DNA of 64,000 nucleotides from Lepidodermella squamata (Eukaryota > Animalia > Gastrotricha), in contig JBLDXI010000015.1 in assembly GCA_047495785.1 (NCBI GenBank), positions 3,038,001 through 3,102,000 of the forward strand, read 5' to 3'. This document shows, piece after piece, positions 54,438 through 64,000 of this stretch (within the stretch, counting starts at the first letter, position 1; each line of letters starts with the position of its first letter). Below the pieces are notes generated by a model. That model was not told where the DNA came from. It saw only the letters and a program-made list of their open reading frames with translations, and ran no database searches. Made by a program: the position numbers and the translations under genes.

Positions 54438-56282
54438 AGCTGAAAAATGGGGAAATTTGATTAAAAATGAAGCGAATAATTCTCGTCGATTTCGTAAAAT
54501 TTTGACACCACTGTAAATTACAGGGACGGAAGCCGAAATTGAAATATACAAGCCGGAAATGCGTGTAATAAACAAGTATAGGATTTGGTGATATAATATG
54601 TGTTCCAAGTTATCGGACGCGCTGCTTATGAACAAAGAATATACAGCGCGCAACTTGTCAACATTATTAAGGCGACGTGTTTGAGCGCGCGCGAGCAACG
54701 CCTTCGCGTGCTGCGTTTATACACTTTTATACACTCTTCTACCTGTCCGCAATATAATTAACAATATTGCAAGCTATAATATAAGTTCCAACTTGCTACT
54801 GACAGCAGCGCGGAGAGATAGACAGACACAATGCGAGCGGCAAAGGACGTGAACGTGTTGTTAGGGGTTACGACTCGAGACGACAAAATTTACCCTGCAA
54901 AATACGAGGGCAATTATTAGTTTTACGACTACACATGTTACAAACAAGTAGAATATTTTCTTTGTATTATTAAAAACTTGAAATTTTAACGCGCTAGTCC
55001 GCGGTGTTGGCATATAGATGATTACAGCGGAGCTTTGTTATAGCAAAAGGCCAGAGTTCCACTGAACTCGCTATTTTCTGAGAATAATTGAGTGCGTAAA
55101 CAACAACTGACTCTCAAGTCCGCATATAGTCGCAGTGATAAAAATTAAAATTTTCAAGATAATTAATTTGTTTAGGGTGGAGAGTATGGGTATTATATCA
55201 TAGGCAATTTTTTTACTATTTGACCGATGATTATTATTCGTGTGACCTATTACGCTCGGGTGTTAATTGCGTTTCAGATGTAGGCCTGATGATAAAAACT
55301 CATCGCTAAGCCCCATCTCCATAAGTTATGGCGTGCATCATTACACTTTCGTCTACATCTGAAGCTGATGCTCACATTGTTATAAGTAATGGCTGTGTTG
55401 TAATAATTATTTTACGTGTATATTTATCTGATGCTAAGAATTATTGAGGAGGTGTTGACGCCGCTATTTCAGACGCCGCGCTACTCCCGTGGAATTATTT
55501 GCTTAGCTTTTGTGGGCAGGCTTGATGCCGCTGTTGTCGCCGCTTCAAAATCGCTCAGAATTCGGCCGAAAAAAAATTGGGTTACTCTGCAGGATATTTA
55601 GATAAGTGTGGTAATGAATACTTATTACGGCAATAAATAGTGCGCTTTTTTATGTAAAGAAATGAGCATTAAAATGAAATAAAAAGAAGAGCCGCCATGC
55701 AGAAATTAGGAACGTTGTCGCGCAGTTCCATTTTTATGTTATTTTTGCTTAGCGGCTCATCCTCAAAAGTGACTTTTTTGACAGGGACGAATAAATTTTC
55801 GTAAATAGGACATAACTCATTCATTATTTTATTAGTAAACACGGTGTGGAAAAAAATAACACAAGCCCATTTTTTCATTAAAAATTAGCTAGCGGTAAGC
55901 TGGAAGATTTTCGCTGACAAAAGAATTAATTTCGACATCCGCATGAAAAAGTGACAGCGCACTTTTAATAGGACAAATTATTTAAAAAAAATGGTCACTT
56001 GTGTGCGCTAATTATTCGACATTATGTTTCGAACCAGTTGATCGACAGCCAATGCTCGGAATTTCTCCTGTTTTCATGCCTTCAACTTTGCTCTGTAAGC
56101 CCACTCGCGGCGCTACAACGCGTGAAACATCGAAATTAGCTAATTTAATATTATCGCTTGCGAGGTTTAGCCGTTAGTTATTGCTCTAACTCGATTAGCT
56201 ACTAGTGCATCAAACCAACCTATTCTCATCTTAAGAGCTGCGGCAGCTAGGTTATCATTGTTATGATTTATTGATTTGCATA

Positions 56283-58631
56283 ATGCTATCAAAATTGTTT
56301 TTCGCTCTTTCACTCTTGATTCCTATTGCATCAAAGCAGTTCGAGTTGTCGCTTTTAAGCCTAATGCCGTTAACTGGCCAAGAGCCATCGGATGGGAGGG
56401 CCTGTGAAGCTGCCTCCAAGGTCGTGATCGATGCTGTCAACTCGCGAGATGATATTCTACCCGAATACCGGATCTCTTTGCAAGTACGAGACGAAGGCCG
56501 TGGCGCCTTACGAGCACCTAGGAGTCTCATCGAATTCATGAGAGACTTCGAAGACCAGCAAAATACACGGAACAACACTTTCATGGCCCCAGTGATTGTC
56601 GGAACGTCATTAGCCTGTCAGAGTTTTGCTTTCGTAGCTAAGAAGCTTCATTTCACAGAATTCGCCGAAGGATGCACCGGGCCATTTCTGCTTGGCAAGC
56701 GTGACTTGTTCTCAACGTTGTACCGAGTACAAATGCCACTTGAAAATCTCGCTATGGCTGTTACGCTGTTCGCGAAACATGTCGGGAAATGGGGTCAGAT
56801 GGGAATTTTCACCTACTCCCCAAACGCAAATGATTACATGCTTGGTCAGACGATACAGAAAGTTCTCGTAGAAAACGGTGTGTCGGTCGTCTACTACGGC
56901 AGCGAGCCTGATGTGACGCCAGAGATTATTCAAGATATCATTCAAAGCGGGGCGAGGTTCATCGCCTCGGCTCATGGCCAAGTTTGGCTGACCATCAAGT
57001 TTCTATGCCTGGCCTATGAAGCCGGCCTGCGACCGCCTAAATTCGCGATTTTTCCTAATTTCTTCGCGTATTTCGCAGCTGATAGTCCATTGTTGACCTT
57101 CCCACCAGGTTGTAGTCGAGAGGTCATCTTCGAACAGTTGAGAGCTACCTTTTTCGTTGGTAGCTGGGTGCAGGCTGTGAAAAATCATGGAGACACTCCT
57201 CTAGGCTACGACCTTGTCGCTTTTGAAAGAAAAACTCTTGCGAAATTAGGTAACCAGATAGTCCCAGATTATCCGCAGCGGTTCTTGTGCCACGACGCTA
57301 CAATGGCAGCTGTGATGACCCTCGACAAAAGCGAACGTATTCTAACGGCCAAATTTAATAAGACCCTTCGAGATTTTTCGACACATCCCGAACTAGTGGC
57401 GCAAGTTGTCAATGCATCTGCCTCTGCTCTTGATTTCAATGGCCTGAGAATCGGCCGCCTTAAATATTCCGAACGGCTTGAACTTGATGATGAAGAAATG
57501 TGGATTATTCAGTGGTTGAACGGCACCAATCGATATGCCTACAAAGTAACTCGAAGGACTAACGACTATAGAAGTGTGCTGAATTCTAGCACCTATGACC
57601 TAGTTACAGTAGAAGGAGCGAAATGGTTCACAAAACAAGGGTTCCCGCCTAAAGATCTATCCTACATCCGACATGAAGTTGTGGTATTCCCGATTGCTGA
57701 TGCGGCAGTTGTTATTTCTATGTCAGCCTTTATATCGATCATTCAAGGTCTAGTTTTCATCGGAACCTTCTCTAAGGACCAGCAGTCACTCATGCTCAAT
57801 CATCGGGCTTTTAATCTTTCCTTGTTCTTTTGTTGCTTCATCCTGAATCTCGCAGCTGCTGTTCTGATGTCTGAAAAGGCGTTTTACGAGGAATCTCTGT
57901 GCAAAATCCGACCTTTATTTTGTGCAATGGGACTGACAGGATGTGACGCGTTGATAGTTGCAAAGCTTTACTCACTGCGGAGCTTGTCCCGTTGGGTGCA
58001 AACCCGTTTCCTCGGCCGTAGAAGTAGAACAGAATTCGCCGAGATCACAGCTGGGGCCGTCGCTACAGACGCTTGGGAAGATAACATGAAATCTACTACA
58101 TTTCAGACGAAATTGTCCAAAAATGCAAAGCTGCTGAGTTCAATGACTGCATCGTCACTTATTGCAGCTCTGATAACGAGCGTTACGTGGGTTTCGTCAG
58201 ACAGTTTCACTGTAAGATATCAAATTTCACAGCCCATCTATGACGAGATGTCTGACTCGTATTTCGACATCAAAAGCTCGTATTGCTCATCTGAAAGATG
58301 GACAGCATGGCTAGCTGGATTTTTAGCGGCAAATTTTGTTTTATTAGTCGTTGTATGCTTAACAGGGTGGCTGCTGCTGAGGAGCCTAGGCTTGCCATCG
58401 TTTGTCAATCACCAGTCGAGACTGTTGAGCTGGGTCTCGTTCAACTCGATTGCAATATTTTGCATCTTCTCATTGCTGACCTATGTCTTGGCCTCGCAGA
58501 ATGAGAATCGTCAATGTTTGGCTGCGGCTGTTGGCATGTTGGTGTTTTCGTCTTCGGTGATTGCAATTGCTCACTTTCCCGTCTGGACCAGTCGATGGCC
58601 GTTAAAATCGGAGGGAAAAATAACAAAGTGA
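56283..58631 (+). CDS. Intronless class C GPCR (Venus flytrap + 7TM), GABA-B-receptor-like and divergent
   Basis: Signal peptide, LMPLTG...AVNSRDDILPEY, LFSTLYR, CHDA, PPKD leading directly into TM1 (no cysteine-rich domain), LCKIR...IVAK and CSS. Confidence 0.85.
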   Translation: MLSKLFFALSLLIPIASKQFELSLLSLMPLTGQEPSDGRACEAASKVVIDAVNSRDDILPEYRISLQVRDEGRGALRAPRSLIEFMRDFEDQQNTRNNTFMAPVIVGTSLACQSFAFVAKKLHFTEFAEGCTGPFLLGKRDLFSTLYRVQMPLENLAMAVTLFAKHVGKWGQMGIFTYSPNANDYMLGQTIQKVLVENGVSVVYYGSEPDVTPEIIQDIIQSGARFIASAHGQVWLTIKFLCLAYEAGLRPPKFAIFPNFFAYFAADSPLLTFPPGCSREVIFEQLRATFFVGSWVQAVKNHGDTPLGYDLVAFERKTLAKLGNQIVPDYPQRFLCHDATMAAVMTLDKSERILTAKFNKTLRDFSTHPELVAQVVNASASALDFNGLRIGRLKYSERLELDDEEMWIIQWLNGTNRYAYKVTRRTNDYRSVLNSSTYDLVTVEGAKWFTKQGFPPKDLSYIRHEVVVFPIADAAVVISMSAFISIIQGLVFIGTFSKDQQSLMLNHRAFNLSLFFCCFILNLAAAVLMSEKAFYEESLCKIRPLFCAMGLTGCDALIVAKLYSLRSLSRWVQTRFLGRRSRTEFAEITAGAVATDAWEDNMKSTTFQTKLSKNAKLLSSMTASSLIAALITSVTWVSSDSFTVRYQISQPIYDEMSDSYFDIKSSYCSSERWTAWLAGFLAANFVLLVVVCLTGWLLLRSLGLPSFVNHQSRLLSWVSFNSIAIFCIFSLLTYVLASQNENRQCLAAAVGMLVFSSSVIAIAHFPVWTSRWPLKSEGKITK

Positions 58632-60092
58632 AAGTTTGATTTCGAATTTTCCCAGGCTTGGAAAATTAAACAAAAATTCAGAAATATTAACTAAGAATAT
58701 TTTGTCAAGGCACTTTGTTCATCTTTATTTTAGCTTCGAATCTGAGATTGTGCTATTAAAACATCGGACATTTAATAGAGCAAATTGAAGTCAAAAGGTC
58801 ACGCTTTTGATTAGTTGCCGCCTCAGGCTCGCTTTCGGCAAAATTGATGATGATAATGTCAGACATTTCGTCTTCGCCACAGTCTTCGGCAGACTCGTCA
58901 AGGATTCGATTTGTTCGAACAGTGACGTAGACGTAATCATTAAAATCGATCTTCGACATTTGGCTATTTGACAATTAGTTCATGAACAGAGTGCACACTC
59001 TCAAGTTGAAGAGACAACATTCATGCCTGGGTTGATTTTTTGTTCTCCACGTCAGCAGAGCCTATACCTAAACATACGTCATTTTTCTGGCTATTTTCTG
59101 ACCGACCTTTCACTTTCGCGAAATTCCTCAGCCGCCCACCAAATCTGCTGGAATGCGCTTATAATATATTCAACTTGGGGTTTTTATTTACCTTTTAGTA
59201 AATTTGATGTACGAGCCATCTACGTAACTTTTAGTAGGCAAAAGCTTAGCCTTGAAATAAACACGCAATTAAGCCTATTTGTTTTTATTAAAGCATCAAG
59301 CTCTTAGAGAACTTTTAGTATATGAGAGAAAGGGCGTGATTATCACATGATTATGATATTATTGCTGGAGGGTTATGAATGAAACGTACTTTGCCCCCTT
59401 GGGGCTTGGGCTTAAATCAGGAATTTGCGCAACGATTCATTTCGATTGCTTTGATCAGGATATATCAATCAACCTTAAACAGTCTGAAATCTCAATCCGA
59501 ACCTTTTTAACATGGGTATTAATTATTACTAATTAAGCGGTGTAACCGGTCGTTTCTTCAGTAATATTTATTAATTTAGTCAACTATATGTATAGGGTTG
59601 AAATGTGATGAATAAATATATACATATTTTTGAATGTTTTTGGAAAATATTTAAATTTTACACGATTTTTCCCCAAATAAAAAATTAAAATTAAAATTGA
59701 AAACTGTGTCGTTAATTACGTACTCGTGGTCGTCCCACTTGTGTGTTAGTAGGCTACTGCTTCAAAGCTGGAAATCATGGGTCCGGTGCCTGGAGAGCTC
59801 TTCATTCACAAATTCTTTGCTCTCCCTTGATAGATCGCCATCTGACCATATATACTTGGTCCATCATGCAACATAATTGGGAGTTTTATACAGCGTCCTA
59901 CTGTCAGGCGAGCTGCCGTATATACTCGAGCCGTAAAGATATACGGTGTGAAAAACAATGAAAAGCAACCAAATAAAACAACTGAGTGCACGTTCCGCGT
60001 TTGGTCACGGCCCAGTGGCATCCGCAGCCGGCTTAGTTCTGCAGCTGGACGTTACACGAAAAACAGCTCGCACCGAGCATTTTAACTGGAAA

Positions 60093-62986
60093 ATGATTTC
60101 AAGTGCCATCTTTCTACTGGCTTTGCTCAGCTGCCATCTCAAATCAACGGATGGGAATGATCAAATCGATACTTTTGACCATAGATCAGCTGGCCTTATC
60201 ACCTGCCCGCCTTACCTGTACGTCCACCGTAAAACCACCGATTTCAATATAACATGTACGATACGCTTCGATGAATTCCTGTCATCCCGCGCGACGGTGG
60301 CGTCTGGCAGCAAGCAAATCGTCTGGACCCTCCACTCGGACCAGGTTCACGACGAAAACGACGAAGCGGTGATCAAACTGCACCCAGGCGAGAAGAATGG
60401 CCACTATCACTTCATCTACAACGAACAGCTTAACATGTCAACGGCGACTGCTGTTCTAGTCTTTTCGAAAATCGACCTAAAAACAGACTATACCAACTAC
60501 ACGTTATCAGTTCGAAGCCCGAAAACATTTTCCTCGGTCGATGTCAAGGTATACGAACGTGGGCAAGGCAAAGCCGCGTTTCAATGGTGGGATTACCTTA
60601 TTTTCGTGTTGATTCTCGTAGTTTCGGCATTAATCGGTGTTTACTACGGATTTTGCGCGAAATCTGACAATTCCCAGGCGGAATACATGTTAGGCGGCCG
60701 GCAAATGGGCTGGTTCCCAGTATCGTTGTCCTTATTAGCTAGCTTCATGTCAGCAATCACCCTGCTAGGCACACCGAGTGAAATCTACTCAACCGGAACG
60801 CAGTACATATTCATCGGAATTTCATACCCGATAACAATGCTAATAGCTGCTCACATTTTCCTACCAATTTTCTACAACCTCCGAATTACCTCAGCCTATG
60901 AGTATCTGGAAATTCGATTTTCTAAGGCGGTTCGAGTCGCTGGGGCTAGTCTTTTCGTCCTTCAAATGGTCGTCTATATGTCTATGGTTGTCTACATGCC
61001 AAGTTTAGCCCTCGAAGCTGTTATCGGCCTTAATTTCTGGTTCTCAGCTCTAACAACAGCTGTTGTTTGCATTTTCTACACGTCGATAGGTGGCATGAAG
61101 GCGACAATGTGGACAGATGCGTTTCAGGTTATCATGATGTACATTGGGCTGATTTCAATCTTCGTCCAGGGCTGCATTCGCGAGGGAGGTTTTACGAATG
61201 CGTGGAATAAGGCGATGACGCGGAGTAGGATTGAGTTCTGGGAAATGGATCCTGATCCGAGGATTCGCCACTCATTTTGGACTATGACTGTTGGTGGAAC
61301 CTTTACCTGGCTGTACACCTACGGCGTGAACCAGGTATAAATGGTCTAAAATGAATAAGTCCACCTTAAAAGTTCATAAGTTGAAATAAGGAATATATAA
61401 ATGAACTTTTCGATCCTTTCCGAAGGATTTTTTTTTTGGATTTTTTAGGATTTTTCTTTAGGATTTTTCTTATCCAAATTTAGGGAATTTTTATTATTTA
61501 GGCAGTTTGGTGCTGGGTCTTGAATTTAGCGCTGGATCCCCAACTTCAGGGTGCCCACTTGGCACTGTTTTCAAACCCAATTTTTGAAGTTGAGGGAATA
61601 ACTCCAAAATTAAGATTAAAATTAAAAATTAAAAATTTCAAGATTAAGAATTTAGAATTTAAAAGCTGAAGATTTAAAATTAAAAAATTAAAATGTAAAA
61701 ATTTCAAATTTAATTTTCAAATTTTCAAATTTAAAATTAAAAAAATTTAAATTTAATTAAAAAAAACCATCTTTTTATTTACCCAGGCCCAAGTTCAACG
61801 CGGTCTGTCTGCGAAAACACTTCGAACTGCCCAAATCTCGTTTTGGATCAACGCGCCAACTCTAATCCTAATGATGCTCATCCCAGCAATGTGCGGCATC
61901 CTGATTTTCTCGCGTTACATGGACTGCGACCCAGTTAAAGCAGGCGTCATCTCAAAAAAGGATCAACTGCTAATTCTTTACGTAATGGATATTGTTGCCG
62001 AGGATTTGCCAGGTATACCTGGGCTATTCATGGCAACCCTTTTCAGCGCGGCCCTTAGTACCATTTCTTCTGGAATCAACGGTCTAGCCGCTGTTACATG
62101 TCGTGACTACGGCGTTGAAGAATGGCTAAGAAACCGCGGCCATCCCGAGGGAAGAATCACAATGATCGCTAAATTTATTTCAATCCTATACGGGGCTCTT
62201 TGCATAGTACTGATTTTTGTCATTCAATACCTACCTGGTCTGCTAGACTCAGCTCTAGCCCTGTTTGGCGCCTTGGGTGGGCCATTACTCGGCATTTATT
62301 GCTGCGGAATTTTCCTGCCTTGGATCAATAAATACGGCGCTTTAGCCGGGTTATTATCAGCGTTATTCCTAACAGTCTGGATGACGGTTGGCGAGAAGGC
62401 GAGTCAACACATCTCGCAGGCACAACGCGGCCCGAGTTTGTCTACAATGGCCTGTGATGCTCATTTCCTTCAGACGTCCCGGGCCCATGACGCCACGCCT
62501 GAAGCTGCGGCTGGGTTGTATCTTAACCACTTCATTCCAGATAGGAAGACAGATTTCGGCCGAATCTCTGGACTCGAGAATCTTTACTCGATTTCTTACC
62601 TCTACCTCTCAATTGTTGGCATCAGGTTTGCGAAAAATCAGCATTCAGTATTCATAATTTTTCAATTTTTTTCTAGCGTGTCGGCCTCGGTCGGCATTGT
62701 TGTTAGCGCTTTCACAGGCTGGACTCACAACGTCGAGCTTCAATCGAATTTATTCCACCCAGCCGTTGTTCGATTGGCTGAAAAATACGGCTGGAAAACG
62801 TGGAAATCACCTGCCCTTGAGGCTAAAGGCACCCTGCCGTCTATTCCAAGTCAAATGGTTATGCCTGGCGATGTCAGCCAAGAGATTTCACTTGAAACTT
62901 ACGATAATGGTGATAATGAAACTAAATCAAATAATATTGTGATCAAGCGGGTTAACAATAAGTCTGACGATGAATGCCGTGTGTAA
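60093..62986 (+). CDS. SLC5A5/6/8/12-type sodium:solute symporter with an N-terminal signal peptide and Ig-like ectodomain; exons 60093-61334, 61787-62625, 62677-62986
   Basis: WDYLIF...EYMLGGRQM, SLLASFMSAITLLGTPSE, SAYEYLEIRF, GGMKATMWTD, GVNQ|AQVQR, CDP, DQL and LSTISSGIN. A ~160-aa leader lies in the same exon as TM1. Confidence 0.9.
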
Positions 62987-63128
62987 AATTATCAAAATAA
63001 TCTGGCCACTAGTCTGATCCTATTCAAGTTGCTTTCCTAACCCTTTAGTATTTTTTAAATAAAATTTTCAAAATTAATGGAACCTTCTGGTTTCAGCCGT
63101 ATTTTTTTATTTAATTTTTTTTTCGGCG

Positions 63129-64000
63129 CTAGTTTCCGGTGTAATTTGAAGCGTAGCGTGACGGAATGAGGCCACGCCGGCTGCCGTACTCCTCCGCATT
63201 ATTCGCCGCTTCGTTGATGGACGTTGATGATGCTGACAAGGGTTGCATTTTGTAGTCGTGATTATGCCGATTCAACAGTTGTCTGCGAATAAGGAAAGCC
63301 ACGCTGAGCGCTATCACCGCAGTGATAACCAAAGATCCGAGAATTATCAGCGTAATCGCCCACCAGGTTGAAAGCGTTGCGTGATGATGGCCCTCGTTAA
63401 CTCGGCTATCATGGCAGCAAACTAATTTTGAATTAAAAATTTTTTTAATGTAGATTTGAGATATTAATTGCGCAACGAAAAACGAGTATGAAGCTGAAAG
63501 AAAAATGAGCAAACTATTTATTAAGCTGGCAACGATCTCGTTTCAGTGTGCTCTCATAGGATTCATTGATCAAACGAGAACAGACAATTAATTCATTTAT
63601 CATTAATTAATTTTAATTATCAATTAATTTTTAATTAATTATTATTGATTTCTCAAATTCAAAATAATTTTATAATTAATTTTATCAATTTGCTATGTTG
63701 CAATTTTCGAAATTTCGCTGCTCTAATGTCACTGTAGGAGAAATTGTTGATATTAATATTTTACTCTTATATCTTTGCTCTATTGTCGTTGCGCACTTCT
63801 TGTTTATGCAAAATCAATATTGCCTCGAATGATTATGAAGAATGATTATTAGAAAATTTAAAACTTACAATGGCCCTTTTCGCATGATATTTGACATTGC
63901 GACAGCCTTCGATGCCAATCTCGAGCCGAACAAGGTCCGTAAACTCCAGGCGATACAAGTGTCTCTTCTTTATTAGTTAAGAACACATATTCTCGCCCTG
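63129..64000 (-). CDS. 3' end of a single-pass membrane protein with a Cys-rich juxtamembrane segment, 5'-partial; exons >64000-63869, 63421-63129
   Basis: GREYVFLTNKEETLVSPGVYGPCSARDWHRRLSQCQISCEKGHF|CCHDS...WWAITLIILGSLVITAVIALSVAFLIRR, joined by a phase-1 GT-AG intron. Confidence 0.65.

Follow-up and report, generated by a model that had tools for sequence, protein, structure and literature searches.

A gastrotrich SLC5-type symporter gene with a predicted signal peptide and Ig-like ectodomain ahead of its first transmembrane helix

We analyzed a 64,000-nucleotide (nt) stretch of the genome of the gastrotrich Lepidodermella squamata (contig JBLDXI010000015.1; hereafter the window), and focused on a forward-strand gene at 60093–62986 in which a hydrophobic leader and a single divergent immunoglobulin (Ig)-like domain precede the membrane part of a sodium:solute symporter (SSF). 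The gene, whose three coding exons specify a product of 796 amino acids (aa) by arithmetic, is an expressed and selectively constrained member of the SLC5A5/6/8/12 group (SMCT/SMVT/NIS-like). An earlier inspection of the letters alone (the sequence-only reading) had proposed that a signal peptide and an Ig-like ectodomain are fused to this SLC5 carrier, a proposal that now stands on two AlphaFold models whose structural matches are exclusively Ig domains, on RNA coverage, on purifying selection, and on how rarely the layout occurs in the databases.

The fused N-terminus, its fold and its expression

The open reading frame (ORF) of exon 1, which opens with the ATG at 60093, is unbroken up to 61334, immediately ahead of the GT of intron 1, and the Ig-like domain and the first transmembrane helix (TM1) share this exon with no intron between them. 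Ahead of the W-W-D-Y start of TM1 lie 164 residues (aa 1–164), in agreement with the roughly 160 first estimated, and Kyte-Doolittle hydrophobicity peaks in the N-terminal region only at aa 2 and aa 169, leaving no additional transmembrane segment between the domain and TM1. In-frame methionine codons ahead of TM1 are confined to M1 and M115, and the next usable one, M199, lies beyond it; because TM1 is conserved in all SLC5 proteins and lies upstream of M199, translation has to begin at M1 or, improbably, at M115 in the middle of the domain. A hydrophobic leader is present in all four Ig-bearing relatives described below, three of which end it in small residues like A-x-A.

Between domain and TM1 runs a short stub, conserved in 5/5 Ig-bearing proteins with the tether pattern E-R/K-G-Q-G-K-x-x-F. 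Ordinary relatives start 8–30 aa before their W/V-D-Y motif and have similar short tails at the same place (such as T-G-Q-K-N-x-F), and for this reason the stub represents the old N-terminus, in front of which the signal and the domain were added. SLC5 carriers have their N-terminus outside the cell, as established for SGLT1 and NIS, so that leader and domain ahead of TM1 should be extracellular. The several N-glycosylation sequons mentioned in the sequence-only reading number three in the ectodomain (N52-I-T, N114-M-S and N135-Y-T), with N52 and N114 recurring in 4/5 Ig-bearing sequences and N135 in 3/5, a recurrence that is consistent with a lumenal or extracellular location of the domain.

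To characterize the fold, we modeled the window domain with AlphaFold (60192–60581, alignment of 5 sequences; pLDDT 75.3, pTM 0.69, nine strands) together with the corresponding domain of a relative, P0003 (alignment of 8 sequences; pLDDT 84.4, pTM 0.78). On these predicted models the domain is a two-sheet Greek-key beta sandwich with Ig strand order, and the strands of the window model (B = DFNITCTIR, C = IVWTLH, E = TATAVLVFS, F = NYTLSVR, G = FSSVDVKVYE) reproduce the B, C, E, F and G assignment made beforehand from the sequence pattern. The AlphaFold/Foldseek check that had been suggested for the domain came out in its favor, with Ig domains only among the 50 PDB matches listed for the window model (E about 4e-5, TM-score 0.54–0.63), including antibody VL, DIP-alpha, myelin P0 and MPZL1. 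In the ESM Atlas the same model matched I-set/V-set clusters only (TM-score 0.64–0.69), and VIA-align superposed it on DIP-alpha Ig3 with Z 12.4 and a root-mean-square deviation of 1.9 over 98 residues. Comparing the P0003 model with 48,161 chains by a method independent of Foldseek yielded Z 12.0–10.7, every match being an Ig V/I-set domain (antibody and T-cell receptor V domains, NCAM Ig1, Dpr/DIP, SYG-1, RIG-5 and basigin). The Pfam Ig models (ig, I-set, V-set, Ig_2, Ig_3) give no match to the window domain even at E 10.

The cysteine pattern of the domain departs from that of a canonical Ig fold. The F-strand position, where a missing cysteine had been pointed out, is occupied by Leu138 (relatives have L, I or E), and the canonical B-F disulfide is thus absent. 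The B-strand Cys55 is present, and a second cysteine, Cys38, stands in strand A, 17 residues before it and followed by Pro. Both are invariant in 8/8 aligned domains, and a Cys38-Cys55 (A-B) bond probably replaces the usual B-F bond. The C-strand Trp78 is W in 4/5 sequences and F in one, and the tyrosine corner D132-Y-T-N-Y136 (D-x-x-x-Y) is complete in three sequences (window protein, P0001, P0003), partial in P0097, and lost in P0002.

Expression was read from two sequencing runs, X1 and X2, the latter being a DNA run. X1 contigs cover about 60070–61334 and about 61900–63300, with zero depth at 59754–60007 and 61405–61785, over both of which X2 is even, and one X1 contig passes from 62625 straight to CGTGTCGGC (62677–62685), the first letters after intron 2; this exon-only coverage and the one spliced contig are why we take X1 as RNA. 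Coverage in X1 is unbroken across 60135–60642 with no skip-type joint removing the domain, in contigs that are short and do not fix the 5' end. Removal of intron 1 gives N-Q/A-Q-V-Q-R-G (junction at the slash), matching the intronless relatives, of which P0001 and P0003 served as full-length stand-ins in the analysis, and removal of intron 2 gives G-I-S-V-S-A-S-V-G compared with G-I-F-V-S-A-S-V-G in P0001. Since intron 2 is in frame, the raw ORF reads through it.

Constraint on the domain is evident between two related proteins, P0002 and P0128, encoded at loci L006 and L007. Their Ig domains differ by 15 synonymous and 16 replacement changes (dN/dS, the ratio of replacement to synonymous divergence per site, 0.25; binomial p 6e-4 against neutrality), all 4 indels are in frame, and the transporter core has a dN/dS of 0.10. 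Within the window's own species, the second haplotype seen in X2 has, in aa 11–34, 5 synonymous and 5 conservative replacement changes and lacks one codon, and it has 15 differences in the transporter core, all of them synonymous (7 in the exon 1 part, 8 in exon 2); in the Ig core (60195–60528) X2 shows no haplotype difference.

The comparison of these two loci (L006:1-2577 vs. L007:296-2905) also revealed an abrupt change in divergence, with 11–52 differences per 100 nt in the stretch that takes in the 5' flank, the signal peptide and the Ig domain and just 0–3 per 100 nt in the whole core. Divergence drops where the Ig domain meets TM1, at about L006 position 630 (synonymous divergence dS 0.23 vs. 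0.023); candidate causes are recombination, core gene conversion and a chimeric assembly.

Behind the domain, the transporter core is recognizable in both halves, which match Pfam SSF (PF00474) above its cut-off of 22.8 bits, the first over aa 198–379 (92.5 bits, profile positions 1–184) and the second in exon 2. Of the solved chains aligned with exon 1, SMVT (E 4.3e-81) and SMCT1 (1.1e-78) are followed by NIS (3.6e-69), in alignments running from query aa 158–159 to 414, and the core is 57% identical to ordinary spiralian SMCT/SMVT-like proteins. Together with the purely synonymous core differences and the core dN/dS of 0.10, these matches mark the transporter as intact, and the strong purifying selection on the core gives indirect support to Na+-coupled transport. 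Because the core is about equally near SMVT and SMCT1 its substrate is not assignable, and uptake of an organic anion or vitamin coupled to Na+ is what its relationships would suggest. The sequence-only reading had also singled out QRG in place of the usual QRY: the letters are correct, but among the 120 best matches of the core, which serve as its relatives throughout, the position varies (Y 48, A 37, C 21, T 6, G 2), and we rejected the idea that it marks an altered function.

Distribution and origin of the fusion

Among the 120 relatives the N-terminus before TM1 has a median length of 15 residues, as expected from the short N-terminus attributed to SMVT/SMCT/NIS-type carriers, and an N-terminal extension of 130–145 aa occurs in only four, namely P0001, P0002, P0003 and the fragment P0097. 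The architecture is accordingly as unusual as had been supposed. All four come from ENA metagenome assemblies, with cores 66–75% identical to that of the window protein and Ig domains 30–43% identical to its own. Because they share samples, and because two Ig-SLC5 genes lie in tandem on one contig (L001, with P0127 at 518–2710 and P0003, both intronless ORFs), the metagenome proteins look like paralogues of one animal. P0127 and P0001 differ at 4 of 592 core residues and have wholly different signal peptides (MKVIFLVFLSTASSAIA vs. MLLAFLTIALVLNAVNA). A further 762-aa protein from Dimorphilus with a 130-aa extension (P0079) was set aside as a merged gene prediction, carrying Pfam domains of a seven-transmembrane G protein-coupled receptor.

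We then searched 1.84 billion representative proteins by HMMER with a profile of the domain (alignment A4, first sequence P0003), and recovered its own clade, one FN3-repeat protein, and one multi-Ig protein of the annelid Owenia fusiformis (CAH1800411.1, P0122; E 2.6e-4, 18–20% identity to P0003). The FN3-repeat protein (P0121, E 3e-10) was rejected as a repeat-inflated, partial beta-sandwich match, its 11 repeats matching only profile positions 63–99. The related Owenia domain itself reaches E 0.002 with Ig_3 and 0.062 with V-set, both short of the Pfam cut-offs. Because two domains of the Owenia protein share the cysteine pattern of the window domain and lack the F-strand cysteine, the match links the window domain to Ig proteins at the sequence level and hints at an Ig subtype of spiralians that almost escapes the Pfam models.

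No further copy of the Ig-like domain or of SSF was found in the window, and a word search with the N-terminal region alone returned no relatives, a result that is uninformative as the relatives share too few 5-mers. In the literature we found no description of an Ig-SLC5 fusion, nor papers on the metagenome samples. The Ig-SLC5 architecture is thus rare, found solely in this genome and in one animal represented in metagenomes. At window positions 60679 and 60724, on the opposite strand, X1 contig ends carry the TM1 region of a different paralogue (I-A-K-F-E-W-W-D-Y, V-I-F-A-L-I-L-V-Y), and at least one further Ig-SLC5 family member is therefore represented in that run. In a quick tree of the transmembrane part alone, the five Ig-bearing proteins form one clade (SH-aLRT branch support 100) on a stem of 0.82, a topology that fits a single fusion event before the duplications.

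What the ectodomain may do for the carrier

Carriers and channels often rely on separate Ig partners, such as basigin and embigin for the monocarboxylate transporters (MCTs) and the beta subunits for voltage-gated sodium (Nav) channels. By analogy with these, we tentatively prefer, with a confidence somewhat short of even, to regard the Ig domain as a built-in accessory, a beta-subunit-like ectodomain of an otherwise ordinary Na+-coupled carrier. The basigin Ig domains modulate both the kinetics and the trafficking of MCT1 (PMC12838822).

Under this accessory role, an ancestral short extracellular N-terminus would have gained one divergent Ig-like domain preceded by a cleavable signal peptide, which would direct the new N-terminus into the lumen of the endoplasmic reticulum, where the domain would fold, become N-glycosylated and probably be locked by the Cys38-Cys55 bond between strands A and B. 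It would end up outside the cell, tethered at most about 9 residues away from TM1, which lies at the periphery of the SLC5 fold, and might there aid folding, surface delivery, stability, or lateral or partner docking of the transporter, with the core presumably keeping its ordinary Na+-coupled uptake of organic anions or vitamins.

Several points weigh against the accessory role or the evidence beneath it. Ordinary SLC5 carriers do without such a domain, and a chaperone role is therefore not compelled; the domain changes more quickly than the core, a difference also compatible with recognition; and its net charge is not conserved (pI 5.0–8.0 among paralogues). On the structural side, both models are predicted structures, based on alignments of 5 and 8 sequences, and the best Pfam Ig match of any paralogue (Ig_3 with P0003, E 0.11) is not significant, while X1 is RNA by inference only, its contigs being short with none bridging intron 1.

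Foremost among the alternatives, the domain may be a recognition or adhesion module that binds a protein or glycan on another cell, the matrix or cuticle, or a microbe, and so places the transporter at one particular membrane domain or makes it a ligand-sensing "transceptor". We regard this as unlikely, though the nearest folds are indeed single V/I-set adhesion domains (DIP/Dpr, NCAM Ig1, SYG-1, RIG-5, myelin P0, MPZL1) and there are several paralogues in which dissimilar Ig sequences sit on far more similar cores. The pace at which the domain outruns the core, together with its loop indels, could be taken for the mark of such a role, but dN/dS remains far under 1 with no sign of diversifying selection, and the Ig core is free of heterozygous differences in the window's species. 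Likewise, the ten-fold higher synonymous divergence of the 5' block that holds the domain, between two genes that are otherwise near-identical, extends into non-coding 5' flank, which points to a recombination boundary rather than to selection on the domain. A single domain on a 9-residue tether, moreover, would extend only a few nanometres from the membrane.

The bolder form of this idea, that the Ig domain genuinely serves recognition and that these SLC5 proteins are ligand- or contact-gated carriers, transceptors or adhesion-anchored carriers, strikes us as improbable. If it were true, the family would offer a natural example of Ig accessory subunits arising or being lost by fusion or fission, and the sharp change from old to young haplotype, which falls exactly on the Ig/TM1 junction in the two related genes, might stem from ectodomains being exchanged as modules.

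A kinetic modulator or substrate antenna is a doubtful alternative of much the same low standing, in which the domain, placed beside the outer vestibule, would alter the apparent affinity or directionality of transport, as is reported for basigin on MCT1. The membrane-vicinal Ig domain of basigin is reported to change the equilibrium of MCT1 roughly fourfold, and it may act to concentrate lactate and H+ (PMC12838822). The very short and strictly conserved tether would suit such a part, as would the long stem of the Ig-bearing clade in the core tree, which would mean that the core changed after the fusion. We checked the antenna idea through the charge of the domain and found no conserved charge or pI among the paralogues. 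Furthermore, TM1 of SLC5 carriers lies at the periphery and does not belong to the 5+5 core (as in the vSGLT, SGLT and SMCT1 structures), and a domain attached to it is not obviously above the substrate path.

That the segment is a non-functional leader or decaying relic, with a working transporter starting downstream, is very improbable and already largely refuted, for although Pfam finds nothing in aa 1–166, the word search retrieved no relatives of the segment, and the reads do not fix the exact 5' end, a start at M1 or M115 is required by the position of TM1 upstream of M199, the segment is conserved at the protein level in five genes (invariant cysteines, recurring sequons, in-frame indels, and the dN/dS given above), and its fold is confidently predicted in two paralogues.

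Whichever role applies, SLC5 carriers are textbook examples of transporters with a bare N-terminus, and an Ig-SLC5 fusion kept through several gene duplications provides a self-contained system for asking what an Ig domain does for a transporter, opening questions of folding, surface lifetime, placement and kinetics. It also adds a divergent Ig subtype, with cysteines in strands A and B and none in strand F, that Pfam profiles miss. The practical weight of the finding is modest, the organism being obscure.

Gene layout, neighboring loci and known systems

The features of the gene are collected in Table 1. An AATAAA lies downstream of the stop codon at 63058. Short AT-rich repeats (variants of "aaatttaaaatt" and "ggattttt") fill intron 1 between 61440 and 61770, where contigs of both X1 and X2 skip or break.

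Table 1. Features of the Ig-SLC5 gene, in window coordinates
Feature	Position	Strand	Evidence or remark
Start codon and predicted signal peptide, aa 1–21	60093–60155	+	Hydrophobic core aa 2–16; first in-frame ATG within the X1-covered region
Variable mature N-terminal tail, aa 22–34	60156–60194	+	Unalignable between paralogues
Ig-like (V/I-set-like) ectodomain, aa 35–155	60195–60557	+	AlphaFold model and fold matches; Cys38, Cys55, Trp78, D132-x-x-x-Y136-x-L138
Nine-residue stub R-G-Q-G-K-A-A-F-Q, strand G to TM1	60558–60584	+	Equivalent to the short N-terminal tail of ordinary SLC5
Exon 1 remainder: TM1 onward, first half of SSF core	60585–61334	+	Pfam PF00474, 92.5 bits
Intron 1, GT..AG, 452 nt, AT-rich simple repeats	61335–61786	+	Sequence; X1 depth zero at 61405–61785 while X2 covers
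Exon 2: second half of SSF core	61787–62625	+	Pfam PF00474, 41.8 bits, profile positions 222–404
Intron 2, GT..AG, 51 nt, in frame	62626–62676	+	Spliced X1 contig
Exon 3: last transmembrane helix and cytoplasmic tail, stop TAA 62984–62986	62677–62986	+	X1 coverage continues

Directly upstream, a 786-aa ORF at 56271–58631 (+) has hydrophobic helices downstream of a ligand-binding region recognized by Pfam as ANF_receptor (E 9e-9) and is probably an intronless class C-like receptor gene. Downstream, at 63129–63512 (-), lies an ORF of 127 aa that encodes one hydrophobic helix and matches nothing in Pfam; since the highest X1 depth (27.9) is reached within it, at 63183–63300, something on this segment is expressed.

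Turning to known systems, the closest are the carriers SLC5A8/SLC5A12 (SMCT1/2), SLC5A6 (SMVT) and SLC5A5 (NIS), which share the transporter core, both SSF halves and the same N-out topology, and it is this topology that makes an N-terminal ectodomain possible. Ordinary members of the SMCT/SMVT/NIS type, in contrast, have no signal peptide and only the median of 15 residues before TM1, against 164 in the window protein.

The likeness to basigin and embigin, the partners of the SLC16 MCTs, lies in an extracellular, membrane-near Ig domain beside a polytopic carrier, and the membrane-proximal Ig domain of basigin is itself among the fold matches of the P0003 model (4u0q_B, Z 10.7). Those partners, however, are separate single-pass proteins that pair with unrelated carriers by way of their own transmembrane segment, whereas the window Ig domain is fused to its carrier and has no such segment of its own. 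It has no sequence relationship to basigin, and the likeness is one of working principle rather than of membership in an accessory-subunit family. The beta subunits of Nav channels are a comparable case of separate Ig partners.

For the domain alone, the Owenia protein is the nearest counterpart. Two of its domains (residues 254–366 and 421–540) have the strand-A Cys-Pro, the strand-B cysteine 17 residues on and the C-strand Trp as in the window domain, followed by an F-strand F/Y-x-N/D-Y-x-L without the F-strand cysteine and then S-N-x-x-G, as in the window subtype. It differs in being a classical Ig-superfamily protein, with several Ig domains, one C-terminal anchor and no transporter, and the similarity is weak.

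Finally, fusions of NanM (a Kelch mutarotase) to SSF, the sole other N-terminal extracytoplasmic fusions on SSF that turned up, were found as structural neighbors of P0003 in the ESM Atlas, in clusters of Bacteroidota and Verrucomicrobiota carrying the automatic labels PF00474 with PF24996/PF01344. The fused part in these bacterial proteins is a beta-propeller enzyme acting on the substrate, as opposed to the Ig domain of the window protein, but both place a sizeable extracytoplasmic domain N-terminal to an SSF transporter, a position that evidently tolerates fusions.

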